The notes beneath the pieces are model-generated. The model worked only from the letters and a program-made list of their open reading frames with translations, was not told the DNA's origin and searched no databases. From the sequence record MN794232.1: a stretch of DNA of 64,000 nucleotides; one strand, written 5' to 3'. The position numbers and the translations under genes were made by a program. Below, piece by piece: positions 1 to 62,107 of this stretch. How positions within the stretch are numbered: the first letter of the stretch is position 1; the number at the start of each line of letters is the position of its first letter.

Positions 1-28
1 GAAGCATATACAATTTGCGGAAAAGAAT

Positions 29-54
29 AAAAGAGGGGCATTCGCCCCTTTTTT
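29..54. terminator. Bidirectional intrinsic terminator
   Basis: AGGGGC-attc-GCCCCT stem with A-run before and T-run after, at the end of the - strand ORF 53..1108. Confidence 0.8.
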
Positions 55-1108
55 ATGGTCTGTAGATCATGTGATTTGAACCCATTCGTTCCCATGTACC
101 TAGATTCATGCGATTTTTCATTTCAGCGAAGAATGCGGGGTTTGCTCTAATGTCATCAAGTGGCAGTGCAACAACACCTTCAGTTTTATGCGCCAATAGC
201 TCTAGTTTATCAAGCAAATCAGATGTTGTACGACCGTCATATTTGAATTGACTGAACCAATAACCAATCTTACTGAATTTCGTATCTCTTGTGTATTTCA
301 CATCAAAGCCTTTCAGAGCATACGCTAAGTTACTTTCTTTACCGTGAAACGGCTTGCGATATGCGCTATGTTCAGCACCAGCACGAGCAAGCAATCTCTT
401 CTTAGCTGCGTCTGGTAGATTGAACCACCCATCAAAGTTCTTCTTGAAGTTCAACATCCATGCTTCTGGTGTAGCTGGTGAGCCTTTGAAGTATGCTTTC
501 GTATCAGCAATGGCTTGTGCATAGCGTGCGTTAATCTCATGAGAATAGTTCTGATATTCGTCGTGAGACGCTTCGTGACCGCTTTTAGCGTGACGGATGA
601 ACTCTTTATCAATGTATCCGCGTTTACGCCCTGAGTGTTGATACACGCCCTCTGCGTCGCTTGTCTCGAAGTCTTCAATGTCACCAGAACGATAGTTGTC
701 GTAAGCGTGTTGCAGTTCATGTAATGCCGTGCTATACAACTGTGGTTTCTGCAATCTGAATTTCGCCATGATTTGACTAACTGCTGTTACTCCAGTTATA
801 TCCACAACAAGCTTGAGATACCCTGCTTCTGGGATCGAGTCGTCATGTAATTTGCCATTCCAAACACCGAGTTCGGTTGGGTTATTATTGTCTAACTTTA
901 GATATGCTAGAATACCTTCAGCTAGTAATGCATCAAATTCACGTTCACCTGTTCTGATATTGAGAGTTTTGGTGTTTACAGATAATTTGCTAGGATCCCA
1001 TGGTGCTTTACTTAGAGCGCCTTCTAACTGGCGTTCCAATGTATCGACGATGGTTTTTGACGCTTGTTCTAATGCGCGTTGTGATTGTACGTTTTCAAAA
1101 ATAATCAT
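53..1108 (-). CDS. Putative zincin-like metallopeptidase (HExxH), late gene
   Basis: 351 aa; ALHELQHAYD motif plus downstream HEINAR; TAAATA upstream on the - strand. Confidence 0.6.
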   Translation of the reverse strand: MIIFENVQSQRALEQASKTIVDTLERQLEGALSKAPWDPSKLSVNTKTLNIRTGEREFDALLAEGILAYLKLDNNNPTELGVWNGKLHDDSIPEAGYLKLVVDITGVTAVSQIMAKFRLQKPQLYSTALHELQHAYDNYRSGDIEDFETSDAEGVYQHSGRKRGYIDKEFIRHAKSGHEASHDEYQNYSHEINARYAQAIADTKAYFKGSPATPEAWMLNFKKNFDGWFNLPDAAKKRLLARAGAEHSAYRKPFHGKESNLAYALKGFDVKYTRDTKFSKIGYWFSQFKYDGRTTSDLLDKLELLAHKTEGVVALPLDDIRANPAFFAEMKNRMNLGTWERMGSNHMIYRP

Positions 1109-1126
1109 CTTTTTTCTCGAATTCGG

Positions 1127-1188
1127 TTGACTGTATTACTTATTTAGGTTAATATCTCTCTCATCGAAACGAAAGAGAGAACATTATG
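1127..1188 (+). promoter_or_regulatory. Early promoter cassette
   Basis: TTGACT(1127)-17 bp-TAATAT(1150), then ATCGAAACGAAAGAGAGAACATTATG leader. Confidence 0.7.
1141..1146 (-). promoter_or_regulatory. Late promoter core TAAATA
   Basis: TAAATA on the - strand about 33 nt upstream of ORF 53..1108, inside the spacer of the divergent early promoter. Confidence 0.55.
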
Positions 1189-1881
1189 ACTAATGCAGCA
1201 CGCAAATTTGTATACGACATCTTCCACGATGAGCTTCAAAAGCCGGTTGTGAATCTAGACGTATTTAAAATCAAGGGTTCAGATGGTAAGCCGGTGATTA
1301 ACTATCTATCGAACCCGCACATACGCAAACAACGCTTTATTATGTTCGTGAATAAACGACATAACATCAAGTATGGACGTTCTTTTTGGACGCATGATAT
1401 TCGTGATGATTGTGACAAAATCGAAGGTACTTGGTCGAGCGTGGCTAAGGAAATCATCAAACGCAAAGCCGAATACGCAAATTACGTGACTAAGACGTAT
1501 CTTGATTACGACTATGGTGTTGAAGAGCCGACCCTTGCAATTATCGACAAGATGCTGAACAAGCCGAAGCGTTTTCACGTTGCAAAGTACATCAATAATG
1601 AACTGTGTGTCACATCGACGAACAATTCAATTGTGCTAATTGATCGTGATACTGGTGTGAAATTCGTTGCGAAGATGCAAGATTATCGCCATACTAGTGA
1701 TATAATGCGACTTGCAACACCTGAAAAAGTGTTTACCCCTAACGAAGAGAAAGCACTTTGCAGTGCAATTACAAATCTTGTAAATTCTCGCATCAACGAT
1801 ATTCGTGCTAAGAAACGTGCGAAAGAAGAGAAACGCCGCCAAGCAAAACGTCAACAACTAATCGAAGCATACGGGGCATAA
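1186..1881 (+). CDS. Hypothetical protein
   Basis: 231-aa ORF with GAGAG RBS. Confidence 0.8.
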   Translation: MTNAARKFVYDIFHDELQKPVVNLDVFKIKGSDGKPVINYLSNPHIRKQRFIMFVNKRHNIKYGRSFWTHDIRDDCDKIEGTWSSVAKEIIKRKAEYANYVTKTYLDYDYGVEEPTLAIIDKMLNKPKRFHVAKYINNELCVTSTNNSIVLIDRDTGVKFVAKMQDYRHTSDIMRLATPEKVFTPNEEKALCSAITNLVNSRINDIRAKKRAKEEKRRQAKRQQLIEAYGA

Positions 1882-1883
1882 TC

Positions 1884-2276
1884 ATGGCATACGAAGTAAT
1901 CAACGGCAAATTGCGTAAAGTAAAGAAAAACAAGCCACGCGACTATGATAAAGAATGGTCAAAGATGCACGAAACTGCCAAGAAGCAAGTTGAAATCATG
2001 GATCGTATTCATGAACGTGAGCGCATTGACCGTCTAGGTACTCGTGAGCGTCACGAAGCAATGATTGACCTTGCTAAACGCAATGAGCGTAAAGGTAAGA
2101 AAGGCGGTGACTGTAACGTAACTCAGTGTCAAAAGCCAGGCGCAAGCTCTTACAACACTGCAATGAGAGCGTATTACTGCGAGTCTTGTGCTCACGATAT
2201 TTGGCAAGCAGGTCAACGCGACGGTCGTGACTTCATTCGACCAACACCAGATTACACATACAAGTACGAGGGTTAA
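1884..2276 (+). CDS. Hypothetical protein with Cys cluster
   Basis: 130 aa; CNVTQC...YYCESC. Confidence 0.75.
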   Translation: MAYEVINGKLRKVKKNKPRDYDKEWSKMHETAKKQVEIMDRIHERERIDRLGTRERHEAMIDLAKRNERKGKKGGDCNVTQCQKPGASSYNTAMRAYYCESCAHDIWQAGQRDGRDFIRPTPDYTYKYEG

Positions 2277-2280
2277 TCTC

Positions 2281-2520
2281 ATGGGCGAATTTTTATTGGC
2301 AATGTTTATCTTCTCGTTCGCAATGGCAAACATCGGTTCGATTTTCATTTGCTTGTATGCAGCGTTCAATCGCCAATACAACGTACCGATGATCTTAGTT
2401 GCATTGTACGGGTTCATGGGTACGTTTGTTGTCGGCATCGTGTTCTTTCTGCTATTCATCTTTGCCAAAATCGAAGAAACGAAGTTCTGGCAAAAACTGT
2501 CTAAAATGAGGGAATTCTAA
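2281..2520 (+). CDS. Small membrane protein
   Basis: ATG at 2281 after GAGG; two hydrophobic segments. Confidence 0.7.
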   Translation: MGEFLLAMFIFSFAMANIGSIFICLYAAFNRQYNVPMILVALYGFMGTFVVGIVFFLLFIFAKIEETKFWQKLSKMREF

Positions 2521-2852
2521 TGCAACAAACTGTATTATTCATCGACTTCCGCAACCCACACACTGCGATTGTCGCCAACACGACATTACGAGACAAAAAC
2601 TTCGATTTGTCGGGTATGGGATTGCGTCGAGCTTGTCAGTCGAACTATATTGCACTTGAGAAGCAAGGCAAATGGCGTTTAGTGAAATGTCGTTACATGT
2701 TTGGGTTCGAATCTATGGAATTCAACACGCTCGATGGTGTTGTTGCATTCATCAACGCGATTAACATCGACAACAATCAACCATTGATTCGTGAAGTTGT
2801 TGTTGAAGAAGTCGCACCCGTGTACACTAACATTAAAGTACGAGGTTTATAA
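2520..2852 (+). CDS. Hypothetical protein
   Basis: 110 aa; TAATG coupling. Confidence 0.75.
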   Translation: MQQTVLFIDFRNPHTAIVANTTLRDKNFDLSGMGLRRACQSNYIALEKQGKWRLVKCRYMFGFESMEFNTLDGVVAFINAINIDNNQPLIREVVVEEVAPVYTNIKVRGL

Positions 2853-3133
2853 TGGGCTTTGAAACAAAAATTATCTGCTATGCAGCGCACGTAACTGAAT
2901 TCGAGCCAGGATGGGGAACTCGACCAGATGGTTACATCATTGCCAAGACTGAAGCTGATGTTCTGGCAAAAGGCGAGCACATGCGAGAGATCGCTAAACA
3001 ATCCAAACACGGCTATGAGTATATCGGTGAAGTCTTTAAGTTCGAACCGACTCAGAAAGCTATTGATGAATTAACCGACCGTGACTATATCTGGACAGGT
3101 CGAAACTTTGATGAATGGGGTACTGTACTATGA
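2852..3133 (+). CDS. Hypothetical protein
   Basis: 93 aa; TAATG coupling. Confidence 0.75.
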   Translation: MGFETKIICYAAHVTEFEPGWGTRPDGYIIAKTEADVLAKGEHMREIAKQSKHGYEYIGEVFKFEPTQKAIDELTDRDYIWTGRNFDEWGTVL

Positions 3134-3363
3134 CAATCTTTCTGCTTGTATCATTCTTTCTAGGCGCTTATTTCATGAGCGAACTACCACCAGAATTACG
3201 ATACAAAACAACATCGCCTAAGAAACTATGGGCTTCTGCATCACGACTGCAACAAATTGCACTTGTTGTTGGGTTTGTCGGCGTGCTGTTCTTCTACTTG
3301 ATTCTAGGTATCCTAATTGGATGGACTAAAGTTAAAGAATCCGACTGGAATCGTAAGGGGTGA
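3130..3363 (+). CDS. Small membrane protein
   Basis: ATGA overlap; two hydrophobic segments. Confidence 0.7.
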   Translation: MTIFLLVSFFLGAYFMSELPPELRYKTTSPKKLWASASRLQQIALVVGFVGVLFFYLILGILIGWTKVKESDWNRKG

Positions 3364-3366
3364 TAA

Positions 3367-3570
3367 ATGTCTGCTGCTCCTAAAACTCATTTACAGCGAT
3401 TTGATGAACGAGGTAGAACGCTGTACATTCAAGATGCCTTTGCTCATCATTACTTTGAATATGATGACATCAACAAAACTGTGACAATTGAAACGGTTAT
3501 GTTATGTAATAACGAAACTGTCAAGATTGGTGTATATGAACAGAACGAGTTCGGGAGCGTCAAATCATGA
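3367..3570 (+). CDS. Hypothetical protein
   Basis: 67-aa ORF in operon. Confidence 0.65.
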   Translation: MSAAPKTHLQRFDERGRTLYIQDAFAHHYFEYDDINKTVTIETVMLCNNETVKIGVYEQNEFGSVKS

Positions 3571-3737
3571 TAGTTCTTCAGCACGAGACTGACGGGTATA
3601 TCGTCCAAATTGGATGTGACATTTGTTGCACCGATGACATTGACAAAGCATCCATATTCGAAACTGTTGATGTCGCACAAGAATTCAAAGATCAATGGGA
3701 CTTATGGGACTGGGAAGTTAGAGAGGTCGGCTTATGA
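3567..3737 (+). CDS. Hypothetical protein (56 aa, below ORF-track cutoff)
   Basis: MIVLQHETDGY...; ATGA overlaps at both ends. Confidence 0.65.
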   Translation: MIVLQHETDGYIVQIGCDICCTDDIDKASIFETVDVAQEFKDQWDLWDWEVREVGL

Positions 3738-3922
3738 TGCGTAGGCATGAAATTCAAGGACTAGTTGAACGTCGCGGGTTTGAATTTCGCGAAGCAATCA
3801 ATGAATACAGCGAATCACGTTGGCAAGTCATCGACAATGGTAAAGTGGTCTACGAATCATACAATGAATACTGCATTGAAGCATTCTTGCTTGGCGTAGA
3901 TTACATCACAGACGCAATTTAA
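3734..3922 (+). CDS. Hypothetical protein
   Basis: 62 aa; GAGG RBS. Confidence 0.65.
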   Translation: MMRRHEIQGLVERRGFEFREAINEYSESRWQVIDNGKVVYESYNEYCIEAFLLGVDYITDAI

Positions 3923-3942
3923 GCCGCATTTCGCGGCTTTTT
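3921..3942 (+). terminator. Intrinsic terminator
   Basis: AAGCCGC-atttc-GCGGCTT followed by TTT. Confidence 0.7.
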
Positions 3943-3951
3943 GAGGTTCAT

Positions 3952-4254
3952 ATGAAGAAACAAATATTAAACATTCAGCGCGACGATGCGAAATTCGAGC
4001 TATATCGTCAAGGTCAAGCTGCACGTCATGCACGTGCTGAAATCATCCGACACGTTGCGAAGAATCATAACCCATTTCTAGTTGGTCAATACACGCTTTA
4101 CAAAGAGCACGACGTGAAAATCGTTCGTCAATTGCTTCGTTATGCTGAGATCAATGCTGAAGTGCGCGTTGTCCCTACGATTGGTCGTTTGCCAGACTGT
4201 TTGAACGAAATTCACGGAATCGGATTCGAGGTAACGCTAAATAATGATAGTTAA
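3952..4254 (+). CDS. Hypothetical protein
   Basis: 100 aa; GAGG RBS. Confidence 0.7.
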   Translation: MKKQILNIQRDDAKFELYRQGQAARHARAEIIRHVAKNHNPFLVGQYTLYKEHDVKIVRQLLRYAEINAEVRVVPTIGRLPDCLNEIHGIGFEVTLNNDS

Positions 4255-4528
4255 CATTGCTCATCATTCTTTTGATGTGTACATTGGTCGCGGCACACCG
4301 TTCGGAAATCCATTCAAAGCAGGGATCGACGGCACTCGGAGCGAAGTTATTGAGCTTTATCGAGAGTGGTTGCGCATTCAATTACAAGACGACGAATTTA
4401 AAAAGCAGTTTATGCAACTAAAAGGAAAGATTCTCGGCTGTCATTGTAAGCCAAAAGCGTGCCATGGCGATGTAATTCTCGAAGAACTTGATAGATTGAG
4501 CAGCCCACTAAACAATTTTATAGGTTAA
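4244..4528 (+). CDS. DUF4326-like protein
   Basis: VYIGRGTPFGNPF and LGCHCKPKACHGDV motifs. Confidence 0.8.
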   Translation: MIVNIAHHSFDVYIGRGTPFGNPFKAGIDGTRSEVIELYREWLRIQLQDDEFKKQFMQLKGKILGCHCKPKACHGDVILEELDRLSSPLNNFIG

Positions 4529-4531
4529 TCT

Positions 4532-4825
4532 ATGAGAGAAGCAATTGCATTATTAAGCAACACGAGAATGGGATATACTGACATTAGCGCATTTGGCGAT
4601 CCAGTATTATATGTTCATGCGGGGCATGAGACGGTATTAAAAGTGCAATACACTGAAGATTGCTACTCATTTTACGACTACAGAAGCAAGTATCTTTATA
4701 CAGAGCAGTCCATCGACGACTTAGAGATACATTTGAAATCAATAGATGTCGGGTTAGACGATGATCTACCGTTAAATGGGAACATCGACAAAGACACGAT
4801 ACCAGACGGGGAATTTTTAGAATGA
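4532..4825 (+). CDS. Hypothetical acidic protein
   Basis: 97-aa ORF coupled to the next gene. Confidence 0.65.
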   Translation: MREAIALLSNTRMGYTDISAFGDPVLYVHAGHETVLKVQYTEDCYSFYDYRSKYLYTEQSIDDLEIHLKSIDVGLDDDLPLNGNIDKDTIPDGEFLE

Positions 4826-5742
4826 AGTTTAGTGAATATCAAAGAATAAACGAATCTCTAGATCGCCCTGCCAATTATAAACTGGTTAGAGAACTCCCAA
4901 ATTTAAACGTGTATGCGTTTCAAGTTGATGGTGTTTATTATGAAATAGACATCCAGAAATCAAACATACGAGAGCCTAATGGGATGCAGTCAATGAAAGC
5001 TGAAGTCTCATTCAAAGCACTCGACGGTAGTGGTTATCAACTAACCAAAAAAGACGATAAAACGGCACGAATTGTACTATCAACCGTAGTTGATGCTATC
5101 TTCAGCTTCGTACGCGAATACAATCCTGCTCAAATATTATATTCTGCATTCAACGATGCTGATCCGTCAGATGCTGCTAAACGGCTTCGCTTATATCAGA
5201 TCATGACTAAAGCAAAACTGCGTGAATTCCCTGAATATGATTTCCGAAACGTTGGGCGTGATTTCATCGTCTACGATGTCAATTACCAACAACGAGTCGA
5301 GGAATTTTCAAGAAGAGCACGTCGACCAGTGGGGTATGAAGAAAGATCAGACCACGTTGAAGTAAATTTATCACACGCCAACGCTTTTGCGTTTATACGG
5401 GCGTTTGGTGTAAATGATGGCGACTCAAAGAGCGGCGTACTAGGTAAAGGTCGAGCTTTCGTAGGCGCAACAAACGAAATTAAAGCACGTCTAAGAGTAG
5501 ATCGTGTGGTGTATGAAATGTCTGATAGAGAAGGATGGCTTGCGGCTCTTCAGCACCCTATTTTTGACTATGGCGAGGGTCCTGAAGTTGATCGAACATA
5601 TCTAGTCGGGGCATTTAAAAACTTCTATATCGTGTTGACTAGTCAAACAAGTCTAAAAATATACACCGATGATGCTGCGTTTACAAAATATGTGAATGCT
5701 TTCGACGCGCCATGGTTAAACCCAGAAATAATGGAATCTTAA
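4822..5742 (+). CDS. Putative internal head protein, paralogue 1
   Basis: 306 aa; N-terminus MKFSEYQRINES resembles T4 capsid-targeting sequences; N-domain similar to next ORF. Confidence 0.6.
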   Translation: MKFSEYQRINESLDRPANYKLVRELPNLNVYAFQVDGVYYEIDIQKSNIREPNGMQSMKAEVSFKALDGSGYQLTKKDDKTARIVLSTVVDAIFSFVREYNPAQILYSAFNDADPSDAAKRLRLYQIMTKAKLREFPEYDFRNVGRDFIVYDVNYQQRVEEFSRRARRPVGYEERSDHVEVNLSHANAFAFIRAFGVNDGDSKSGVLGKGRAFVGATNEIKARLRVDRVVYEMSDREGWLAALQHPIFDYGEGPEVDRTYLVGAFKNFYIVLTSQTSLKIYTDDAAFTKYVNAFDAPWLNPEIMES

Positions 5743-5744
5743 AA

Positions 5745-6596
5745 ATGAAATTTAGCGAATATCAAAACGAGCTAACAGAAGCATTTGATCGACCAGCACC
5801 GATCACAGCGCGTCGCGGCAATCAGAGTTTTTTCATGATTGGTGACACTGAGTACATGGTCGGGTTGTATTACGACGACTCGAAAAAATCACTCGGAGTT
5901 GACTTCATGCATAAGCCGGGTGATTCAGCAACGTACTACTACAGCTTAGCCAAAGGCAACTCAAAAGACGCAATGACTGTTTTTGCCACAGTGATTGCAG
6001 AAATCAAGCGGCTTATGAAAGACAACCCGGTAAATAAAATCAGCTTTAGCGCGTTTCAAGACTCTGATAGCTCAGATGCTAAAAAGCGTTTCCGTTTGTA
6101 CAAGCGTATGGCAGAACGTTTCAGCAAAGAGCTTGGGTTCAGAATGACCACGTATGGCGATTCTTTCACCATGACACGTATAAATCCTGTTGCAGTCAAT
6201 GTAGAAGAGCCAACTGGTTATGATACAGCGTGGGGTACTGAAATGCTCGATCTGTATGAAGTCAACGACGCTGCAATTGCCAAAGTCACAGAAGGTGATG
6301 GTGAATGGCGTTTGAATAACTGGAACAAGCTGATTGTTCGCAACGGTAAAGTAACACTAACATCGGGTCCAATTCGAATGTCAGACGCTTGGTACGATGC
6401 GTTTTACGACTTAGAATGGTATCACGATGAAGAAGGCGAACAATGGTTCGATGATGAACAGAAGATCGCGATCATCAATGGTAAAGTTTGGGTCATCAAC
6501 GACATGGAAATTACTATTTGGCCAAGTATTGAGAAATTAGAATTGCAAAGTGACTCGGAATTATCAAGCGGGACACGTCAATTGCTTGGATATTAA
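5745..6596 (+). CDS. Putative internal head protein, paralogue 2
   Basis: Start at 5745, MKFSEYQNELTEA; SAFQDSDSSDAKKRFRLY matches SAFNDADPSDAAKRLRLY in the previous ORF. Confidence 0.6.
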   Translation: MKFSEYQNELTEAFDRPAPITARRGNQSFFMIGDTEYMVGLYYDDSKKSLGVDFMHKPGDSATYYYSLAKGNSKDAMTVFATVIAEIKRLMKDNPVNKISFSAFQDSDSSDAKKRFRLYKRMAERFSKELGFRMTTYGDSFTMTRINPVAVNVEEPTGYDTAWGTEMLDLYEVNDAAIAKVTEGDGEWRLNNWNKLIVRNGKVTLTSGPIRMSDAWYDAFYDLEWYHDEEGEQWFDDEQKIAIINGKVWVINDMEITIWPSIEKLELQSDSELSSGTRQLLGY

Positions 6597-6600
6597 TCAG

Positions 6601-6625
6601 AAAGGTAGCTTCGGCTACCTTTTTT
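6601..6625 (+). terminator. Intrinsic terminator with UUCG loop
   Basis: AAAGGTAGC-TTCG-GCTACCTTT followed by a T-run. Confidence 0.85.
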
Positions 6626-6646
6626 CGTTTTCAGAGCAAAAAACGG

Positions 6647-6708
6647 TTGCACGAAATGCTAGAAACCCCTATTATAGCTTCATCGAAACGAAAGAGGAAA
6701 ACGAAATG
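6647..6708 (+). promoter_or_regulatory. Early promoter cassette
   Basis: TTGCAC-17 bp-TATTAT, then ATCGAAACGAAAGAGG leader. Confidence 0.75.
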
Positions 6709-7005
6709 GATGTAACATCAAAACTTGAATTGTCGATGAAAGAGTTCGTTGACGTTCCATATAACGAGCACAAAACTCATTCTCTTGTTGGTCAAGCAAG
6801 TGAGCACATCAACTCGTATTACAATAATCCGGGTGAAATCGTGACTTCAAACGTCATGTACGTTGAAATCAACGGTGGTATTGTGTATGCTGTAACGCAC
6901 TCTAAGAGTCGCTACCAGCTAACCAATGTGTCTCATGATGAGATTGCGCAAATGGTTAAAGCCGCAAGCGAACGCGGGATTAATATTCCGCTTTACAAAA
7001 ACTAG
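6706..7005 (+). CDS. Hypothetical protein
   Basis: ATG at 6706 after GAGG. Confidence 0.75.
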   Translation: MDVTSKLELSMKEFVDVPYNEHKTHSLVGQASEHINSYYNNPGEIVTSNVMYVEINGGIVYAVTHSKSRYQLTNVSHDEIAQMVKAASERGINIPLYKN

Positions 7006-7065
7006 AAAAATTGCTTTAATACAAACTGATTCACTACTTTTGATTACTTTTGAGAGAAATATATT

Positions 7066-7380
7066 ATGACTACTATCGTAAACTTCACTGCTGCAATCGA
7101 ACTAACTACTAAAGCTCTTGTTGAAACTAACCGTATCGAGGGTCGTTTCTACAACTCACGCATCGGTCACGAGCAAGGTGAGCAAGCGAAAACTGACGCA
7201 GTTCGAGCGTTCAAAGTAATCGACAACAAAGTATATGCTGAAACTCGCAACTGCGTGTTCCATCTTCGCAATCTGTCTGCTCTTGCACTAGCTGACTTCA
7301 ACACTATCAACGCACCAGTGTACATGAAGAAAGCTGATGCTGAGTTCGACGAAATGGTTAAAGCAGCCCTGTTCTCGTAA
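7066..7380 (+). CDS. Hypothetical protein
   Basis: 104 aa; GAGAG RBS. Confidence 0.75.
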   Translation: MTTIVNFTAAIELTTKALVETNRIEGRFYNSRIGHEQGEQAKTDAVRAFKVIDNKVYAETRNCVFHLRNLSALALADFNTINAPVYMKKADAEFDEMVKAALFS

Positions 7381-7832
7381 TGTACCCGAAGAATAAAAGC
7401 TATTATGACTTGGTGTATCTTGACATCGCCAAGTCATTTGCTAAGAAAAGCACCTGCAAGCAGAAGCAAGTAGGTGCTGTCATCGTCAAGAATGATCGCA
7501 TTATCTCACACGGTTACAATGGTACGCCGTCAGGTATGCTTCACTGTAAAGATACCGCTGACTTCGGTGATCTAACCCACCGTCAATGGTCAGAAATTCA
7601 CGAGATTCATGCTGAACAAAACGCGATTTGCTACGCTGCACGCGCTGGCATATCTACTGAAGGCGCGACTATGTACGTCACAGCGTCGCCGTGTCATAAC
7701 TGTGCCAAGCTGATAGTCGCGGCTGGTATCAAAATTCTCATTGTAGGTTCGATTTACAGCGGTTCGCAACCCGATTGGTGGCACTGGCTACGTGATCGCG
7801 GTGTGAAAGTTATTATGTTCGAAGACGAATAA
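7380..7832 (+). CDS. cd: dCMP deaminase
   Basis: QVGAVIVK, GYNG, HAEQNA and PCHNC zinc-deaminase motifs. Confidence 0.93.
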   Translation: MYPKNKSYYDLVYLDIAKSFAKKSTCKQKQVGAVIVKNDRIISHGYNGTPSGMLHCKDTADFGDLTHRQWSEIHEIHAEQNAICYAARAGISTEGATMYVTASPCHNCAKLIVAAGIKILIVGSIYSGSQPDWWHWLRDRGVKVIMFEDE

Positions 7833-7886
7833 TGTTTAATATAAGTAATTCGGACTTATAATAGAGCTTTAACAAGAGAGAAACAT

Positions 7887-8813
7887 ATGAAAAGTACAAT
7901 GTTTTTGAACAACATCACATGCATCGACCATGCATGGGTTGATGATATGGGTGAAATGAATGGTAATAGCTACAATCTATGTGTAGAAATTACCGGTGAA
8001 GTTGACGAAACTGAACAAGTCGTTATTGATTTCAGTGGTTGTAAGAAAGCAATCAAACATCTTGTGGATGATTCGGAATTCGCCATTGATCATCGTCTAA
8101 TCGTCGTTGACGGGTTTAGTGATGCAGTTCTTTCTCAAGTCGAAGATCGACTACGCATTCAAATCGACACGCCGGTCTTCCATGCAGTGTCTACGGTTGA
8201 CGACTGGTATCAAGTCATCAAGCCGAGCGAATTGATCGAAGCCGATTTCAAAATCCCTAGCGATTCTCTGTACATGTCGTATGTTACTGAGTATCTTGAA
8301 AATATGCTACTTGAACAGCTACGTAAACAAGGCTATCCTGTTACACACGTCGCTGTAGAGCTTTCAGAGTCGTTTGACTTACCATCTTGGGCAAACAGTC
8401 ACGTTGAATTTAACTACGCTCACGGGCTGCGTTCAAGCACATCATACGGATGTCAGAACATTGCACACGGTCACCGTTCATTCATTGCAGTAGATAAGCA
8501 CTTGAATAGTAACGGTCGCAAGGTACTGAAGCGCATTGCTAAAGAAATGAGCGGTTATATTGCTTGGTCAGAAAACATTCGCAAAGAAGATGAAGTGTCT
8601 TACACTTCAAATCGCGGCAACTTCTACTTGAGACACAGCAATATCAAAGTAATCCCGACTGAAACTACAGTCGAAAATCTAGCCAATTACATTGCAACTA
8701 CATACGAAGAAGAGTTCCAACGAATGGGCGTTCAGCGTGTGTGGGTATCTGAGGGTCTATCAAAAGGCTCGGTTGTAGACATCAAAATCAACAAAGAATT
8801 GCTCTATAAGTAA
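7887..8813 (+). CDS. queD: Two-domain QueD/PTPS-like 6-carboxytetrahydropterin synthase
   Basis: N-domain VIDF...IDHRL; C-domain AHG...C...HGH and TTVENLA; sits next to folE. Confidence 0.75.
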   Translation: MKSTMFLNNITCIDHAWVDDMGEMNGNSYNLCVEITGEVDETEQVVIDFSGCKKAIKHLVDDSEFAIDHRLIVVDGFSDAVLSQVEDRLRIQIDTPVFHAVSTVDDWYQVIKPSELIEADFKIPSDSLYMSYVTEYLENMLLEQLRKQGYPVTHVAVELSESFDLPSWANSHVEFNYAHGLRSSTSYGCQNIAHGHRSFIAVDKHLNSNGRKVLKRIAKEMSGYIAWSENIRKEDEVSYTSNRGNFYLRHSNIKVIPTETTVENLANYIATTYEEEFQRMGVQRVWVSEGLSKGSVVDIKINKELLYK

Positions 8814-8881
8814 TCAACAAATTAATGTTTAGTAGCACGTCTCGGCGTGCTATTATTGTTTTCTATCAATGAGGAAATAGA

Positions 8882-9550
8882 ATGTTAGACAAAAATAAAG
8901 TAGATCCAGTACTTGGACAAAAAGTTGAAGCGCATCTTCGTAAAATCGGGATGCACACGCCGACTGTTGAAAACGGTCTAACTGATGATGAAAAGAAAGC
9001 TATTCTTGAAGATCGTTTCACTGACATCATGCAAGCTCTTGGTCTTGACTTATCAGACGATTCATTAGTTGATACTCCGAAGCGTTGGGCTAAGATGATG
9101 GTGAATGAGCTTATGAGCGGTCTATCGCCAGATATGTTCCCGAAATGCACTGCTGTAGACAACAAGATGAACTACGATCAGATGGTTTGTGAAAAAGGAA
9201 TTACTGTTCTTTCTCAGTGTGAGCATCACATCGTAACAATCGACGGCTTTGCCACTGTCGCATACATTCCGAAGAACAAAGTTCTTGGTCTGTCGAAAAT
9301 GAATCGAATTGTTGAGTACTTCGCTCGTCGTCCGCAGATTCAAGAACGGCTGACTGTTCAAATCGCTGAAGCACTGAAGTTCATTCTTGAAACTGAAGAC
9401 GTAGCGGTATTGATCGACGCCAAACACTATTGTGTCAAAGCACGCGGTGTTGAAGATAACAACTCAAGCACAGTGACTAGCCACTTATCTGGTGCTTTCC
9501 GTAACGAACCAGAGGCTCGCGCTGAGTTTATGTCACTTGCACGAGGGTAA
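8882..9550 (+). CDS. folE: GTP cyclohydrolase I
   Basis: TPKRWAK, SQCEHH, GLSKMNRIVEYFARRPQIQERLT, HYCVKARG. Confidence 0.97.
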   Translation: MLDKNKVDPVLGQKVEAHLRKIGMHTPTVENGLTDDEKKAILEDRFTDIMQALGLDLSDDSLVDTPKRWAKMMVNELMSGLSPDMFPKCTAVDNKMNYDQMVCEKGITVLSQCEHHIVTIDGFATVAYIPKNKVLGLSKMNRIVEYFARRPQIQERLTVQIAEALKFILETEDVAVLIDAKHYCVKARGVEDNNSSTVTSHLSGAFRNEPEARAEFMSLARG

Positions 9551-9553
9551 TTG

Positions 9554-10930
9554 ATGATAATTGAATACGTTATGTCTGCGACGGGTCATGCTCGTCTCGG
9601 TGCAGCACATAAGCTAATGGACGTGGTTGACACGTCCTATTTGCGCGACATTCTAAATGCAGCGCAAGATCTCGACGGGGTTCACAAAATCAGTATGCTG
9701 TACAATGCATATACTGAAAAGAAAGTCGGTCATCAAATCAATGACTTGTTCGGTGATTCTGTATACAAGGTACATGTCGATTCAGGTGGTCTACAGATAG
9801 TCAACTTGGGTTTAGAGAACACGCCCGAACTTCGCAAAGCAGTATACGAGAATCAAGCAGAATCTGGTGATATTGGCATGTGTTTTGACGAAATCCCATT
9901 GCACAACGAAGCAAAGGGTGGTGGCGCTGCTCGTATCAACACGAAAGACAAGGTCTTCATGTATGATCTAGCGTACAAGTACGGCGTCAAAACAGGTAAG
10001 AACATTCGCGCACAAATCGAAACTTATATCGAGAAGGGTAGCAAATGCAAGCCGTATATCATCTTACAAGGCAACTCAGACGACGACTTTAAAGCATTCA
10101 GTGACGGGATTATGTCTCAACTCGAAGGCGTTGAAGATCACATTGCTGGTTGTGCTGCTGCCGATACATGCATTGGTAATGGCGTGCGTGAGTCTATCGA
10201 CATGATGAGCGTCATTCCGAAACTCAACATCCCAGAGAAAGCAAAGAAATCAGTGCATATGCTGGGAGTTGGCTCAGTTAAACGTCTATTGCCTGCTGTA
10301 GCACTTATCAGAAGTGGTTATTTTGGCGATGACTTTCATATCAGCTATGACTCATCAACGCATACTGGATGTCTGACTAACCGAGAATACACAGACAAGC
10401 TTGGTCGTCGTCGTAAAATCTCAGGTCACGGAATTATGAAAGATGGTAAGAAATTGCCTTCTCGTGAGCTTGATGAAATGCTAGATGAAGTGTGGGGTCG
10501 ATTCGGTCATGCTCTACCGCGTAGCAAAGAAGAGTTCAAGGAATTCGCGACACGTCTGTGGTTGAAAGAACTCGACAAAGAAACAATGACTGACGAAGAT
10601 ATTGTGTTTGAAGTTGCTTGCAACTTGTGTATAATCTTATCACAAGTCAACAACTTTCAAGCGATTATATCTGAAACGTTTGACTTGAATACGCCAAAAG
10701 CTGCTGATCTGTCAGCGTTCTTCGGTGGTTCTGTTGAGAAAAAAGAGCCGCAAGAGGGATTCAAGAAGTGGTCAGCGATTCGTCGCCTTGATGTCCTTGA
10801 TAAACTACTTGACGTTAAAACTATCGAAGCATATGACCGCTGGCACAGTAGCTACGTTGATAGATTACCGTCAATGCGCATTCGTCGCGGCACGACTGCT
10901 GAATTCCCGGCTTTCAAAGAACAAGAATAG
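9554..10930 (+). CDS. dpdA: TGT-fold guanine transglycosylase, probably DNA-acting (DpdA2-like)
   Basis: HVDSGG, CFDEIP, ILQG, HMLGVGS and SYDSS motifs of the TGT/DpdA fold; lies between folE and queF. Confidence 0.7.
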   Translation: MIIEYVMSATGHARLGAAHKLMDVVDTSYLRDILNAAQDLDGVHKISMLYNAYTEKKVGHQINDLFGDSVYKVHVDSGGLQIVNLGLENTPELRKAVYENQAESGDIGMCFDEIPLHNEAKGGGAARINTKDKVFMYDLAYKYGVKTGKNIRAQIETYIEKGSKCKPYIILQGNSDDDFKAFSDGIMSQLEGVEDHIAGCAAADTCIGNGVRESIDMMSVIPKLNIPEKAKKSVHMLGVGSVKRLLPAVALIRSGYFGDDFHISYDSSTHTGCLTNREYTDKLGRRRKISGHGIMKDGKKLPSRELDEMLDEVWGRFGHALPRSKEEFKEFATRLWLKELDKETMTDEDIVFEVACNLCIILSQVNNFQAIISETFDLNTPKAADLSAFFGGSVEKKEPQEGFKKWSAIRRLDVLDKLLDVKTIEAYDRWHSSYVDRLPSMRIRRGTTAEFPAFKEQE

Positions 10931-10948
10931 CGCCTACGGGCGCTCTTT
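10929..10948 (+). terminator. UACG-loop hairpin, weak terminator or stabiliser
   Basis: AGCGCC-TACG-GGCGCT followed by CTTT; same hairpin at 28541. Confidence 0.5.
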
Positions 10949-10959
10949 ATGAGGTAAAC

Positions 10960-11868
10960 ATGAGCAATTATGATCAAGTTTCAGCTATTGCTGCTGAACA
11001 TTTAGGTAAAAAAGCTGGCGATTACAGCGATTTCGTTGACATCGTAGAAGTTCGCCCTGATTTACTCGTGCCAATCCCGCGTGAACTGAATCGAACTGAC
11101 TACGGTATCACAAATGAAGACTTTGCAGGGTTTGATACGTGGCATGGCTTCGAAGTTTCTGCACTGACTGAACAAGGTCTGCCTGTATCAGGCATGGCTA
11201 AAGTAGTGTATCCGAGTGATTCACCGAACATCGTTGAAAGTAAATCAATGAAACTGTACTGGAATAGCTTCAACATGGCTAAAGTCGCTGCGACTCGTGC
11301 TGAAGTGAAAGATGCAATTGAAGCAATCGCGTCGCGTGATCTATCTGAAGTCATCGGTGCGCCTGTTCAAGTGAGTTTCTTCACTGAAAAGCTAACTCAA
11401 CCTCATGGTATGACTGGCTTTGCTGAACTCGACAAATATGTTTCTGAATCGACTGTGTTTGACTCTGAGAGTGGTGCTGACACCGAGCTATTGCAAGAGT
11501 CGCACATCAAGAAACTGAAAGTGTTCACGCCTAATCTGCGTTCAAACTGTCGCGTTACACACCAACCCGACTTCGGTGATTTGTACGTATACATGAGCGG
11601 CGAAAAGACTCCGACTGTTGATAGTCTGATGCAATACATCGTTTCTTTCCGCAAAGAGAATCATTTCCATGAAGAATGCGTTGAAATGATTTACAAAGCG
11701 TTGCTTGACAAGTTCGACCCGACTGAACTGATGGTCACAGCGTTATACACACGTCGCGGTGGATGGAATATCTGTCCAGCACGAGCGACACACGAAGAGC
11801 TATTGCCAGAAGCACTTGGTAGTAAATCTGTCTCGCACACTAACGGAAGTTGTTTATTCCGTCAGTAA
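10960..11868 (+). CDS. queF: NADPH-dependent preQ0 reductase (bimodular QueF)
   Basis: LLVPIPR, QueF motif ESKSMKLYWNSF, catalytic SNCRVTHQPD, FHEECVE, YTRRGG. Confidence 0.93.
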   Translation: MSNYDQVSAIAAEHLGKKAGDYSDFVDIVEVRPDLLVPIPRELNRTDYGITNEDFAGFDTWHGFEVSALTEQGLPVSGMAKVVYPSDSPNIVESKSMKLYWNSFNMAKVAATRAEVKDAIEAIASRDLSEVIGAPVQVSFFTEKLTQPHGMTGFAELDKYVSESTVFDSESGADTELLQESHIKKLKVFTPNLRSNCRVTHQPDFGDLYVYMSGEKTPTVDSLMQYIVSFRKENHFHEECVEMIYKALLDKFDPTELMVTALYTRRGGWNICPARATHEELLPEALGSKSVSHTNGSCLFRQ

Positions 11869-11923
11869 TAAGAGCTATGATGAGTGTTCAATTGTGAGCA
11901 CTCATATACTTGAGAGGTTAAAA

Positions 11924-12640
11924 ATGAAAGTAGTATCTGTTCTAAGCGGTGGCTTGGACTCAACAATCCTTACGTACAAACTAGTTGACGAATTCGGCAA
12001 AGACAATGTGTTTGCATTATCGTTCTACTACGGTCAAAAACAGTCGATTGAGCTAGAAAAAGCTAAATTGACTTGTCAAAAGCTCGGCATCGAGCATCGT
12101 CTAATTGACATTTCATTCTTAGGTGAAGTCGTCGCGCCAGTCTGTGCGAATATCGCTGGTTCAGATGTTGCTATGCCAACTATTCAAGATGTTCTCGGTG
12201 ATCCTCAGCCACCAACTGAAGTTCCATATCGTAACATGCTATTGAACACAATCGCGTTCTCATTCGCACAAGCAAATGATTGTTCAGCGGTGTTTACTGG
12301 CATTCAAGTGCATGACGCATATGGTTATTGGGACTGCACGCAAGATTTTCTTGACGGTATGAACAAAATTTCAGCACTGAATCGTCAACACGAAATTTTG
12401 TTACTTGCGCCATTCGCTCAAATGTCAAAAGCAGATGAAATAGAAATCGGCGTTCAGCTTGGTGTGCCGTTCGAGGATAGTCTGACTTGTTACGACCCGA
12501 ACGAAGCTGGCGAAAGCTGTGGTAAATGTCCGTCGTGTGCTGAACGCATCATGAACTTCGGCAAAGCTGGTATAGTCGATCCTGCGCCTTACTCAATTGA
12601 CATCCCGTGGGAGCAAGTATTTGCTAAGGCAGGTCATTAA
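11924..12640 (+). CDS. queC: 7-cyano-7-deazaguanine synthase
   Basis: SGGLDS, YGQKQ..E, VPYRN, CYD...CGKCPSC..R; start at 11924 after GAGAGG. Confidence 0.95.
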   Translation: MKVVSVLSGGLDSTILTYKLVDEFGKDNVFALSFYYGQKQSIELEKAKLTCQKLGIEHRLIDISFLGEVVAPVCANIAGSDVAMPTIQDVLGDPQPPTEVPYRNMLLNTIAFSFAQANDCSAVFTGIQVHDAYGYWDCTQDFLDGMNKISALNRQHEILLLAPFAQMSKADEIEIGVQLGVPFEDSLTCYDPNEAGESCGKCPSCAERIMNFGKAGIVDPAPYSIDIPWEQVFAKAGH

Positions 12641-13248
12641 TGTGTGGATTATTTGCTGCTAGAAGCAAGCAAGAGCTTATTGAATTGTCAAAAAGCAACA
12701 TTCATCGTGGTTCGCGTACTCACTCTGTGAGTACGTTTAAGAACGGTCACGTGACGATTCATAAGTTTACAGGCGCGTTTGACGCGACGAATGTTCCCGA
12801 TAGTGCAGATTTTTATATCTGTCACGTACAAGCACCAACGGGAACAAGTGCTCAAGCACATCCCGCTATTGTGACAATCGAAGAGAATGGTCAGTTACAC
12901 GATTCACACGTGTGGCACAATGGCATTCTTAAAGATCATTACATGAAAAAGCAGTCTCAAGATTGGGATACTGCACACATTGCCGAAGCAATTTGCTACG
13001 GAAAACTAAACGAACTTGACGGTACATTTGCTTGTTTTCACTTCATAAACGGTCATTTGCGTGTATTTCGCAATGAAATCAGCCCGCTGTTCATGAGTGA
13101 AGACGGGACATCGTTTAGCAGCACGCGAACGATTCTGACACCAGAGCATGTTGAGCCGAATAAAGTGTTTAACATCGACTTGAAGACGTTTAAAATGTCA
13201 ATCGTAAACGAGTTCAAGACTCTAGAAAACCCCTATTTCTTTATGTGA
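12640..13248 (+). CDS. Class II (Ntn) glutamine amidotransferase, stand-alone
   Basis: MCG N-terminus (Cys2 nucleophile), HRGS, HVQAPT, WHNGIL; TAATG-coupled to queC. Confidence 0.8.
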   Translation: MCGLFAARSKQELIELSKSNIHRGSRTHSVSTFKNGHVTIHKFTGAFDATNVPDSADFYICHVQAPTGTSAQAHPAIVTIEENGQLHDSHVWHNGILKDHYMKKQSQDWDTAHIAEAICYGKLNELDGTFACFHFINGHLRVFRNEISPLFMSEDGTSFSSTRTILTPEHVEPNKVFNIDLKTFKMSIVNEFKTLENPYFFM

Positions 13249-13256
13249 GGTAAAAC

Positions 13257-13532
13257 ATGATTGAAGTGAATATCGACGACTTGCTTAAAAACGGCAAAGT
13301 CACATTTGAATTTGAGAAAGCAGACGGCACTATCAAGACAGTGACCGGTACGCGCAATCTCGATTTCATCCCAATTGAGTTTCATCCGAAAGACAAGCCT
13401 TTAGCTGAAGGTGAGACGAAGCCAGAGAAAACAGAAAAGCAAAAAGCAACATGCGGTTACTTCGATCTCGAAGCTAATGGCTGGCGCTCATTCAAACGTG
13501 CGAATCTTCGCGAAGTAAAATCGTTTGTATAA
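13257..13532 (+). CDS. SH3/Sm-like beta-barrel protein (WYL_2/DUF2693-like)
   Basis: FEFEKADGTIKTVTGT...YFDLEANGWRSF. Confidence 0.65.
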   Translation: MIEVNIDDLLKNGKVTFEFEKADGTIKTVTGTRNLDFIPIEFHPKDKPLAEGETKPEKTEKQKATCGYFDLEANGWRSFKRANLREVKSFV

Positions 13533-18147: not shown

Positions 18148-18726
18148 ATGAGTAGCACAAAAGGTAACGTTAACAAAGACGATTACTACGCTACGCCAGA
18201 CTGGATTGTTGAAGAGTTTCTTGAAAATTTCGAGAGACGGATACACACAACTCATCATTTGAGTATGTCTGCTATGTATGTTCTTGACCCATCATGTGGT
18301 GGTTGTTCTGAACACAAAGCAGCATATCCAGTAGCTTACAAGAAATTGTATCATGTCGATATTGACACAATGGATATTCGTGAAGACAGTCACGCGCAAA
18401 TTATCGCGAACTATCTCGAAACTGATGTTCAGAAGAATCATTACGACATGATCATGACGAACCCGCCGTTCAGCTTATCAGTTGATTTTGCTGAGAAAGC
18501 ATTGAGTGAAATCAAGAACGGTGGTTATGTCGTCATGCTACAGCGTCTGAACTGGCTAGGTAGTATCAAAAGAAAGCCTTTCTGGGACACAATGCCCCTG
18601 AGAGCAGTGATGGTTCACCATCGTCGACCATCATTCCATGGTACAAAAGGCACAGACTCGATTGAGTACGCGCACTTTGTATTTCAAAAAGGTTACGCAG
18701 GTAAAGCAGAGATTATAGTAATATGA
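18148..18726 (+). CDS. Amino-DNA methyltransferase (N6-adenine type)
   Basis: DYYATP, VLDPSCGG (SAM site), MTNPPF (catalytic), LQRLNWL. Confidence 0.8.
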   Translation: MSSTKGNVNKDDYYATPDWIVEEFLENFERRIHTTHHLSMSAMYVLDPSCGGCSEHKAAYPVAYKKLYHVDIDTMDIREDSHAQIIANYLETDVQKNHYDMIMTNPPFSLSVDFAEKALSEIKNGGYVVMLQRLNWLGSIKRKPFWDTMPLRAVMVHHRRPSFHGTKGTDSIEYAHFVFQKGYAGKAEIIVI

Positions 18727-43758: not shown

Positions 43759-44081
43759 GCCAAATGGAATACAATAAAGGCGTATTGCATCCAACTAGCA
43801 AGTCGATTGAAGAACTGGCTGAAGAGCTTGTGACAGATTTACCAAGCTATTACGATTCTAAAGTCGAATATCTCTTGGATAATCACGTCGATTATGGGCT
43901 AGTTTTGGTTTGTGACAAGCCTTACACTGTCACTTTTGAAGCCGAACGCGAAGACCTATATCATCTTGCACGTGCTGACGTTCAAGAAAACGGTGATATT
44001 CATTTCGAGACGTATCACTATAACGGTGGTGCTCATTGGACTGAAGTAGTAGAAGATGCATTACGTGAGGTTAAGCAATGA
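43755..44081 (+). CDS. Hypothetical protein
   Basis: 108 aa; YNGG..WTE. Confidence 0.72.
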   Translation: MSQMEYNKGVLHPTSKSIEELAEELVTDLPSYYDSKVEYLLDNHVDYGLVLVCDKPYTVTFEAEREDLYHLARADVQENGDIHFETYHYNGGAHWTEVVEDALREVKQ

Positions 44082-44251
44082 TCATTCTTGAGTTTATTTT
44101 TACGCTATTAGCCGCATACGCAGGGAACTACATCGGTCGTTATATCTCGGTGAATAATGGTACATACACGAAGGCAGATCCATTTGCGTTTGAAAATCTC
44201 AATCACGAAGTCAATTGGGTTCTGGCGATTGTACTAATGGTGATTATCTAA
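44078..44251 (+). CDS. Small membrane protein (57 aa)
   Basis: ATGA overlap at start; TAATG coupling to tk. Confidence 0.6.
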   Translation: MIILEFIFTLLAAYAGNYIGRYISVNNGTYTKADPFAFENLNHEVNWVLAIVLMVII

Positions 44252-61282: not shown

Positions 61283-62107
61283 ATGGAAATTGAAATCGAG
61301 CGCAAATGGCTAGTTACTGCTGAACAGTATCGTGAATTCGTAAACTGGATGCATTATCGCGATAACGGCGCCACTTCAATGAACATCTTTCAGCGTTATT
61401 TCAAGAAAGATGAGATCTCATTCGTCGATGGCTCGTTTTACATCAACAGTCGAGTGAAAGAAGGTCGCGGTTATTTGATTAAAGCACCGAAAGACTGTCC
61501 TGATCTAACTGGCGTGAATCTACGCAAGCTAGGTGCGCGTATGCGACTAACCACGTCTGAGATCTTCTTTGACAAGCTTGAATTCACAATCAAGATCCCA
61601 CACGGTGACGGCATTGCCAAGCGTGAAATCAACATCCCGCTTGAGTCTGGTTATGCAGACTTGATCACAGATTCGATTGAGAAAGATGACAAGCTAAATC
61701 GCAATACAACCGAAGTCGTCCCGACGGGATTGATTAAAAAGGTTCGTTGGTCGGGTGAAGTTGACGACGTACATTACGATGCTGACCGTTTCACGAATCG
61801 ACCTTTTTACATCATCGAAGCTGAATTCAAAGATGAAGCTGAAGCTGAAGCATTCGTTACACCGTTTGAGTTCATTCGCGAGGTGACGGAAGACAAGCGA
61901 TTCAGCAACAAGCGAATGGCATGGAATCACGATGCCGCAGACGGGTTGGCTAGTAATATACGCCTGTATATCGAGAAGCTTGAGAAAGAAGCGGATGCAT
62001 TGCGAAGTGACACGCTCGTATCAATGCGCGAAAGCGTAACGAACGAAATCATGGCAGAACGTTACGAGAAAATTGCTCGTGACTTAAAACACATTGTAGG
62101 TGCGTAA
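61283..62107 (+). CDS. CYTH-domain (triphosphate tunnel metalloenzyme) protein
   Basis: EIERKWL, RMR, TIK...KREINI, KKVR, IIEAEF, EVTED.RFSN. Confidence 0.85.
   Translation: MEIEIERKWLVTAEQYREFVNWMHYRDNGATSMNIFQRYFKKDEISFVDGSFYINSRVKEGRGYLIKAPKDCPDLTGVNLRKLGARMRLTTSEIFFDKLEFTIKIPHGDGIAKREINIPLESGYADLITDSIEKDDKLNRNTTEVVPTGLIKKVRWSGEVDDVHYDADRFTNRPFYIIEAEFKDEAEAEAFVTPFEFIREVTEDKRFSNKRMAWNHDAADGLASNIRLYIEKLEKEADALRSDTLVSMRESVTNEIMAERYEKIARDLKHIVGA

Follow-up and report, generated by a model that had tools for sequence, protein, structure and literature searches.

The closest described relatives of the system reported here are the 7-deazaguanine DNA-modification systems of other Vibrio phages. 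The transglycosylase DpdA2 was defined in phage nt-1 by Hutinet et al. 2019 (PMC6884629), and the DNA of that phage carries the deoxynucleosides of 7-cyano-7-deazaguanine (preQ0), 7-amido-7-deazaguanine (ADG) and archaeosine (G+), that is, dPreQ0, dADG and dG+ (PMC6884629). In the VH7D group, the virion DNA of phi-Grn1 and of phi-ST2 contains 816 and 668 residues per 10^6 nucleotides, respectively, of dPreQ1, the deoxynucleoside of 7-aminomethyl-7-deazaguanine (preQ1), together with 35 and 44 of the methylated derivative mdPreQ1 and with 0 dG+, 0 dPreQ0 and 0 dADG (Hutinet et al. 2023, PMC10516641, Table 1); mdPreQ1 depends on DpdM (PMC10516641). Schizotequatrovirus 6E351A has 15% of its dG replaced by dPreQ1 (PMC12028318). 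Here we analysed a 64,000-nucleotide stretch of sequence record MN794232.1 (hereafter the window), positions 7887-13248 of which hold a cluster of six genes predicted to make preQ1 and insert it into DNA. Two by-products of the analysis concern a small glutamine amidotransferase gene (Gat) at the 3' end of the cluster and residue 204 of its DpdA2.

Over positions 7887-13248, the window matches Vibrio phage VH1_2019 (MN794232.1) with 100% identity, its base 1 lying at approximately base 62001 of the record. VH1_2019 belongs to Schizotequatrovirus KVP40 (family Straboviridae) and is a KVP40-type, T4-like phage; over the same region, DNA identity is 98.4% to Vibrio phage KVP40, ~86% to the VH7D group (VH7D, phi-Grn1, phi-ST2 and ValKK3) and ~78% to oyster-derived phages including 6E35.1a. 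The six genes are contiguous on the + strand in the order QueD-FolE-DpdA2-QueF-QueC-Gat. An earlier note on this DNA had listed the same six genes, and all of them were confirmed at its coordinates, as were the motifs DSGG, HMLG and YDSS that it had named in the gene of TGT (tRNA-guanine transglycosylase) fold, whose translation contains HVDSGGLQ, VHMLGVG and ISYDSS. Its assignment of the locus to the DpdA2-type modification clusters, akin to that of nt-1, is supported as well, although it had already been published for the KVP40 species. Indeed, the cluster and its likely product are documented for this species and its sister phages: the KVP40 entries in Supplementary Data 1 of PMC6884629 are DpdA2, FolE, QueD, QueE, QueC and QueF(-L), the KVP40 list of PMC8056088 comprises KVP40.0120, folE, KVP40.0122, KVP40.0123, KVP40.0124 and KVP40.0284, and the cluster has been termed core to Schizotequatroviruses (PMC12028318). 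The Gat gene, KVP40.0125, is in none of these three KVP40 lists.

Very probably, the cluster is a self-modification pathway with which this KVP40-type Vibrio phage puts preQ1 into its own DNA. FolE would convert GTP to dihydroneopterin triphosphate, a two-module QueD would form 6-carboxytetrahydropterin (CPH4), and QueE, encoded at a distance, would yield 7-carboxy-7-deazaguanine (CDG). QueC would take CDG through the amide ADG to preQ0 with ATP and ammonia, while Gat, translated directly after QueC, would hydrolyse glutamine and hand the ammonia to QueC; the two would together form a split enzyme of the asparagine synthetase B type (class II Gat plus PP-loop ATPase), and preQ0 synthesis would become independent of free ammonium. 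QueF would reduce preQ0 to preQ1 with NADPH, and DpdA2, by TGT-fold base exchange, would replace guanines of the replicated phage DNA by preQ1, giving dPreQ1, which would hinder host restriction. Within this pathway we propose tentatively, with somewhat less than even confidence, both that Gat is a dedicated glutaminase subunit making QueC glutamine-dependent (a split AsnB-like enzyme) and that Asp204 of DpdA2 is the switch from preQ0 to preQ1. Neither the role of a QueC-linked Gat nor the correlation between Asp204 and QueF was found in the literature searched.

The small amidotransferase Gat and its link to QueC

The last gene of the cluster (12640..13248, + strand) encodes a free-standing class II, or N-terminal nucleophile (Ntn), glutamine amidotransferase of 202 residues, as indicated by its MCGLF start, its sequence profile and its AlphaFold2 (AF2) fold. 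Direct searches of Pfam, NCBIfam and PDB sequences gave no match. Homologues at 33-40% identity carry GATase_6/GATase_7 domains (PF13522/PF13537), and a profile built from 27 sequences aligns from Cys1 to the GlmS and PurF glutaminase domains (E ~3e-5). The AF2 model, with a predicted local distance difference test score (pLDDT) of 93.5, has the four-layer Ntn fold, and its top Foldseek matches are PurF, GlmS and EgtC (E 5e-9 to 1e-5). The catalytic cysteine directly follows the initiator methionine (M1-C2; Cys2 codon at 12643-12645, + strand), an arrangement invariant in the 27 sequences and in 80 of 80 loci. Also invariant are Arg23-Gly24, His93-Asn94-Gly95, which form the oxyanion hole, Trp109-Asp110 of the WDT motif and the C-terminal ENPYFF tail.

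Of 306 confirmed IMG/VR Gat loci, we examined 80, which fall into 27 clusters at 70% identity. In every one of the 80, the gene directly upstream of Gat, and on its strand, is QueC, at a spacing of -16 to +3 nucleotides in 74, and the same order recurs in all five further contigs taken from other assemblies. In the window, the QueC stop codon and the Gat ATG overlap by a single base (TAATG). The other neighbours vary, being QueF in 62 loci, ArcS2 in three and neither in 15, and nt-1, which has no QueF, carries Gat at 90% identity. Gat is tied to QueC, not to QueF, and follows QueC regardless of QueF or ArcS2, so that the suggestion in the earlier note of a branch opened by QueF and Gat is not supported. 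QueC catalyses an ammonia-consuming step. Since this is the sole such step common to all contexts of Gat, we read Gat as the glutaminase for QueC, and since it is kept beside QueF, ArcS2 or neither, its place would be ahead of the branch point. Most likely, we infer, Gat supplies ammonia from glutamine to QueC.

There is a precedent for such a pairing. In enzymes of the asparagine synthetase B type, a PP-loop ATPase adenylates a carboxylate and receives its ammonia from a class II glutaminase with an N-terminal cysteine, and the first half-reaction of QueC, from CDG to ADG, is an amidation of this kind; QueC itself has weak Pfam matches to Asn_synthase and NAD_synthase. The difference is that QueC and Gat are two polypeptides rather than one. 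If the pairing is correct, it would account for an overlooked seventh gene of the pathway, conserved across hundreds of T4-like phages that are uncultured; it might explain how phages sustain preQ0 synthesis under scarce ammonium, and Gat would serve as an annotation marker for such clusters.

Three observations weigh against a glutaminase devoted to QueC. Firstly, the arginine that binds the alpha-carboxylate of glutamine in GlmS and PurF (Arg73) is replaced throughout the Gat family by an invariant glutamine, Gln64 (codon at 12829-12831, + strand; motif HVQAPT), and the nitrogen donor may therefore not be free glutamine; the Gat-QueC protein of phage 9g keeps this arginine. Secondly, Stenotrophomonas DpdA2 phages share the cluster and gave no Gat match, so QueC can work without Gat. 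Thirdly, there was no fusion of QueC with a Gat of this family among the best 150 of 3384 representatives; two longer proteins among these 150 have no detectable QueC domain, and one of them carries a C-terminal DUF3310. The first of these observations also raises the alternative that Gat is an Ntn amidohydrolase acting on some other substrate (a gamma-glutamyl or other amide, or ADG), with no channelling of ammonia to QueC. Besides the arginine-to-glutamine change, such an enzyme would be in keeping with EgtC, a non-amidotransferase Ntn hydrolase, among the structural matches, and with the want of a direct Pfam GATase match for the window protein. We nevertheless consider it unlikely: Cys2 as the nucleophile, HNG of the oxyanion hole and the WDT motif do not vary in the family, and a linkage to QueC that is both absolute and translationally coupled speaks for some part in the QueC reaction, irrespective of the nitrogen donor.

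The Gat family comprises 322 representatives at E <= 1e-30 and is nearly confined to phages. A scan of 185,579 species genomes with strict patterns found it on two contigs only, both from metagenome-assembled genomes (MAGs), one of Acidimicrobiaceae and one of Mycoplasmataceae, and both are probably binned phage sequence. No mention of the family was found in the literature searched, the coverage of which excluded the MMBR 2024 review and the supplement of PMC10516641. A related gene order containing QueF-QueC-Gat was seen in a large group of uncultured T4-like phages (our loci L032, L034, L037 and L046, for example, and L036, positions 1-10500), where it reads QueE-FolE-two unknown open reading frames (ORFs)-Formyl_trans_N-like protein-AAA_28-QueF-QueC-Gat-dCTP deaminase-like protein-QueD. 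The DpdA2 profile finds nothing in these loci. Their formyltransferase-like gene recalls DpdN (fdPreQ1), and a 269-residue ORF might be another type of DpdA.

DpdA2 and its residue 204

The third gene of the cluster (9554..10930, + strand) encodes the DNA guanine transglycosylase DpdA2, a TGT-fold protein of 458 residues identified by its invariant motifs, AF2 fold and orthology. By sequence it matches nothing in Pfam (including TGT), NCBIfam or PDB, and a profile of 41 sequences reached no TGT in PDB; the fold was therefore tested on models. The AF2 model (pLDDT 90.2) shows a TGT-like TIM-barrel fold, and its top three Foldseek matches are two entries of murine QTRT1 and the bacterial DNA preQ0 insertase DpdA (7ui4), at E ~2e-7, whereas other TIM barrels have E values above 1e-3, four orders of magnitude worse. 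Likewise, VIA-align gave Z scores of 17.3, 16.7 and 13.7 over ~305 residues for QTRT1 and DpdA, compared with an aligned length of ~215 residues for other barrels. Invariant in the 41 aligned homologues are D76-S-G-G-L-Q, D112, H235-x-L-G-x-G and D266, so that both catalytic-aspartate motifs, of DSGG type (D76) and of x-D-S type (D266), are present. Protein identity is 92.8% to the DpdA2 of VH7D and 61.7% to that of nt-1 (YP_008125322), the founding member. We conclude that the product of 9554-10930 is DpdA2, and we predict from this comparison that it exchanges guanine in phage DNA for preQ1.

With the bacterial Dpd system (DpdA/DpdB/DpdC) and with TGTs, DpdA2 shares the TIM-barrel TGT fold, the catalytic aspartates of the DSGG and x-D-S/C motifs and the base-exchange mechanism. 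It differs in having no detectable sequence-profile similarity to them and in its helical C-terminal region; furthermore, no DpdB partner was identified. TGTs have a canonical zinc site; the DpdA2 alignment has no invariant cysteine or histidine cluster, and a site of the canonical TGT type is not evident. DpdA1 was also looked for, and the 9g protein used as a tblastn query had no match in the window, nor was any ORF labelled DpdA1 in the 80 Gat loci. In 75 of 80 IMG/VR DpdA2 loci, none of the three genes QueC, QueF and Gat lies within 8 kb.

Which base a DpdA2 inserts differs between relatives. In E. coli plasmid DNA, VH7D DpdA2 inserted preQ1 (2765 per 10^6 nucleotides) in preference to preQ0 (~700) and CDG (~70), whereas nt-1 DpdA2 inserted preQ0 and not preQ1 (PMC10516641). 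Comparing the proteins of the window with those of nt-1, QueC, Gat and QueD are ~90% identical, FolE 72% and DpdA2 62%, which argues that the transglycosylase diverged together with the tailoring enzyme. Across DpdA2 sequences with known gene neighbours, position 204 (codon 10163..10165, + strand; motif AAADTCIGNG) is a candidate determinant of preference for preQ1 over preQ0, being aspartate in 15 of 15 distinct sequences linked to QueF and in 0 of 84 others, where it is serine, alanine or glycine (glycine in nt-1). The association of Asp204 with QueF linkage is repeated in at least three independent contrasts on the DpdA2 tree. Near a loop ending in Glu213, which is itself near-invariant, an acidic side chain would go well with the aminomethyl group of preQ1 in its protonated form, if residue 204 indeed faces the pocket, and Asp204 may thus contribute to the preQ1 preference of DpdA2. 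Should this be true, a single position would predict preQ1 or preQ0 specificity from sequence alone.

One product or several

The six genes are also found in phi-Grn1 and phi-ST2, whose Gat is 96% identical to that of the window. Within the VH7D group (VH7D, phi-Grn1 and phi-ST2; PMC10516641), the gene order is the same, protein identities to the window are 76-97%, QueE is likewise distal, DpdA2 and QueF have been validated experimentally, and dPreQ1 is present in the virions of phi-Grn1 and phi-ST2. A difference is DpdM, the mdPreQ1 enzyme, which the VH7D group has ~33 kb downstream and the window lacks. Indeed, no window ORF contains the CxxxCxxCC motif of DpdM (DUF3109) and tblastn found no match in the window; no phage of the KVP40 species had a tblastn match, homologues being found in the VH7D group and some other Vibrio phages. 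At the syntenic site (window positions 44068-44251), ~183 bp, which hold a short ORF and immediately precede the gene for thymidine kinase, replace 1.25 kb of VH7D that holds gp081 (dpdM) and gp082 (a 109-residue ORF). ArcS2 is missing as well, since nt-1 VPFG_00169, which carries DUF5591, had no tblastn match in the window. Because there is neither DpdM nor ArcS2, we predict dPreQ1 without its methylated derivative as the sole product of VH1_2019, with at most traces of dPreQ0 from DpdA2 promiscuity.

Weighing against this prediction, no deazaguanine measurement for VH1_2019 or for KVP40 itself was found in the literature searched, and the scores of QueE, QueD and QueF are under the NCBIfam equivalog cut-offs. 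Modification levels in relatives moreover differ 100-fold (~0.2-0.3% of G versus 15%), so that the level in VH1_2019 is not predictable.

A more complex outcome was envisaged in the earlier note, in which QueF together with Gat would allow more than one product (dPreQ0, dPreQ1, dG+ or dADG) or a split between DNA and tRNA use. In a branched scheme, QueC and Gat would be the archaeosine synthase of 9g and Crenarchaeota in split form, preQ0 would be divided between G+ and preQ1, and several deazaguanines would occur in the DNA. The window does encode both a class II Gat and QueC, the fused Gat-QueC of 9g yields dG+ (PMC6884629), some dG+ and dADG occur in nt-1, which has the same Gat (PMC6884629), and DpdA2 enzymes are promiscuous (PMC10516641). 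However, phi-Grn1 and phi-ST2, with the same QueF, QueC and Gat, have dPreQ1 and a little mdPreQ1 and none of the three other nucleosides, and the dG+ of nt-1 is accounted for by ArcS2, which is sufficient with DpdA2 in E. coli (PMC10516641). Nt-1 resembles the window in having QueD, FolE, DpdA2, QueC and Gat in a similar order, with QueC 92% and Gat 90% identical, but it differs in the presence of ArcS2, the absence of QueF and a DpdA2 that is only 62% identical and has glycine at position 204.

The likeness to 9g is also limited. Both systems combine a class II Gat with a QueC module, and the QueC parts share 24% identity (E 8e-16); in 9g, though, Gat is fused N-terminally to QueC, whereas in the window the two are separate genes, Gat following QueC. 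The two Gat domains are barely alignable, with glutamine in the window family at the place of the substrate-binding arginine of 9g, and relatives with the window-type pair have 0 dG+. A profile-profile comparison with 9g Gat-QueC gave a faint match centred on the HNG motif, and the idea that Gat is simply a split 9g-type enzyme was rejected. Retention of Gat with QueF, with ArcS2 or with neither again fits a step before the branch point. Taken together, we regard a branched chemistry as highly improbable. Some promiscuity is real but lies in the transglycosylase, as with the preQ1, preQ0 and CDG insertion by VH7D DpdA2; the only known extra branch in this lineage is mdPreQ1 made by DpdM, and that is missing here.

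Use of the phage preQ1 in tRNA was the remaining alternative, with DNA modification as an incidental effect: preQ1 would feed the host TGT and, during infection, preserve queuosine (Q) at position 34 of the tRNA-His, -Asp and -Asn of both host and phage. VH7D QueF restores Q-tRNA in an E. coli ΔqueF strain, KVP40 has genes for tRNA-His, -Asp and -Asn, and DNA modification in phi-Grn1 and phi-ST2 is low, at <0.3% of G. Against these stand a dedicated DNA transglycosylase in the middle of the cluster, the VH7D orthologue of which modifies plasmid DNA, and the 15% replacement of dG in 6E351A. Furthermore, a complete Q pathway is already present in the hosts of DpdA2 phages, and homologues of QueA, QueG and QueH were not found in the viruses analysed (PMC6884629). 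Spill-over of the pathway into tRNA is plausible, but tRNA as its main purpose is the least probable of the accounts considered here. Insertion of preQ1 into phage DNA, the reading we prefer, belongs to a class of modification that gives phages resistance to restriction enzymes and complicates the sequencing and cloning of their DNA.

Biosynthesis genes and the surrounding region

The first gene (7887..8813, + strand; 308 residues) looks, from its sequence, like a two-module QueD (6-carboxytetrahydropterin synthase) with one active module. Pfam PTPS matches above its cut-off (41.9 bits) in two stretches, the best at 173-291, and TIGR03367 matches at 23-73, scoring 36 where the cut-off is 89. 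Of the two T-fold modules, the N-terminal one is degenerate, with Met, Asn and Asn in place of Cys27, His31 and His33 of E. coli QueD (4ntk), and the C-terminal one keeps the AH..C..HGH catalytic and zinc motif (FNYAHGL...GCQNIAHGH). Supplementary Data 1 of PMC6884629 names the orthologue of KVP40 as QueD. The tandem T-fold fusion parallels the two-module architecture of the nearby QueF. FolE (GTP cyclohydrolase I; 8882..9550, + strand; 222 residues) matches PF01227 at 206 bits and exceeds both equivalog cut-offs, with 301.4 bits against 202 for NF006824 and 236.5 against 181.6 for TIGR00063.

QueF, a two-module NADPH-dependent reductase of preQ0 to preQ1 (10960..11868, + strand; 302 residues), has the QueF_N and QueF domains (PF14819 and PF14489) with the motifs ESKSMKLY for NADPH, the Cys-x6-QPD stretch NCRVTHQPD and HFHEE, and matches TIGR03138 over its full length at 223 bits, under the cut-off of 293. 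It is 93% identical to VH7D QueF, which complements E. coli ΔqueF and restores Q (PMC10516641). QueC, the preQ0 synthase that takes CDG through ADG to preQ0 with ATP and ammonia (11924..12640, + strand; 238 residues), matches PF06508 at 178.6 bits and TIGR00364 at 170.4 bits, over the cut-off of 150.3, and contains the SGGLDS P-loop and the zinc cysteine cluster C-x9-CxxCxxC. Its start is the ATG at 11924, preceded by a GAGAGG ribosome-binding site; a longer ORF from GTG at 11759 is unlikely, since it overlaps QueF.

The earlier note had named FolE, QueD, QueE and QueC as the makers of preQ0. Three of these are in the cluster, but QueE lies outside both cluster and window: no ORF with the Cx3Cx2C motif and no tblastn match was found in the 64-kb window, and the VH1_2019 record has the orthologue of KVP40.0284, VH12019_00136, at 153866-154747, ~79 kb from the cluster. 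A second cluster, also outside the window (KVP40 133498-137161; VH1_2019 134040-137700), contains a divergent QueC-like PP-loop protein, an NAPRTase-like protein and two radical SAM proteins, with the Prokka labels queC_1 and queE_1. Its QueC-like protein KVP40.0258 (NP_899504), given as QueC in the 2019 table, was rejected as the QueC of the pathway, its TIGR00364 score being 28.7 bits against 170 bits for the gene in the cluster.

In some sister phages (phi-pp2, TCU-VP03-AIR1 and others), folE and dpdA2 are separated by an inserted homing endonuclease, which in phi-pp2 lies on the opposite strand; the equivalent site of the window, ~9550, is free of such an insertion. Hairpins of 11 pairs followed by T-rich tails, resembling terminators, were found on the + strand at 8830-8855, between QueD and FolE, and at 6599-6624, upstream of the deaminase region; the count of terminator-like sites in the region equals the shuffle expectation. 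Directly 5' of the cluster, 7380-7832 (+ strand) encodes a dCMP deaminase (T4 cd-like; PF00383, phrog_174), which the GenBank entry of VH1_2019 labels tadA, 'tRNA-specific adenosine deaminase', and which looks mis-annotated; the equivalent position in nt-1 is without an annotated gene. On the other side, 9 nucleotides after Gat, 13257-13532 (+ strand) encodes a WYL_2 (Sm-like SH3) protein of 91 residues that is 93-96% conserved in VH7D and nt-1. It was rejected as a member of the system, as five distant phage contexts lack it after Gat. Further downstream, a 192-residue protein (18148-18726, + strand) has weak matches to MTS and Dam methyltransferases (E 1e-3 to 6e-3), and the nt-1 'DNA methyltransferase' VPFG_00186 lies at a similar distance downstream of the nt-1 cluster.

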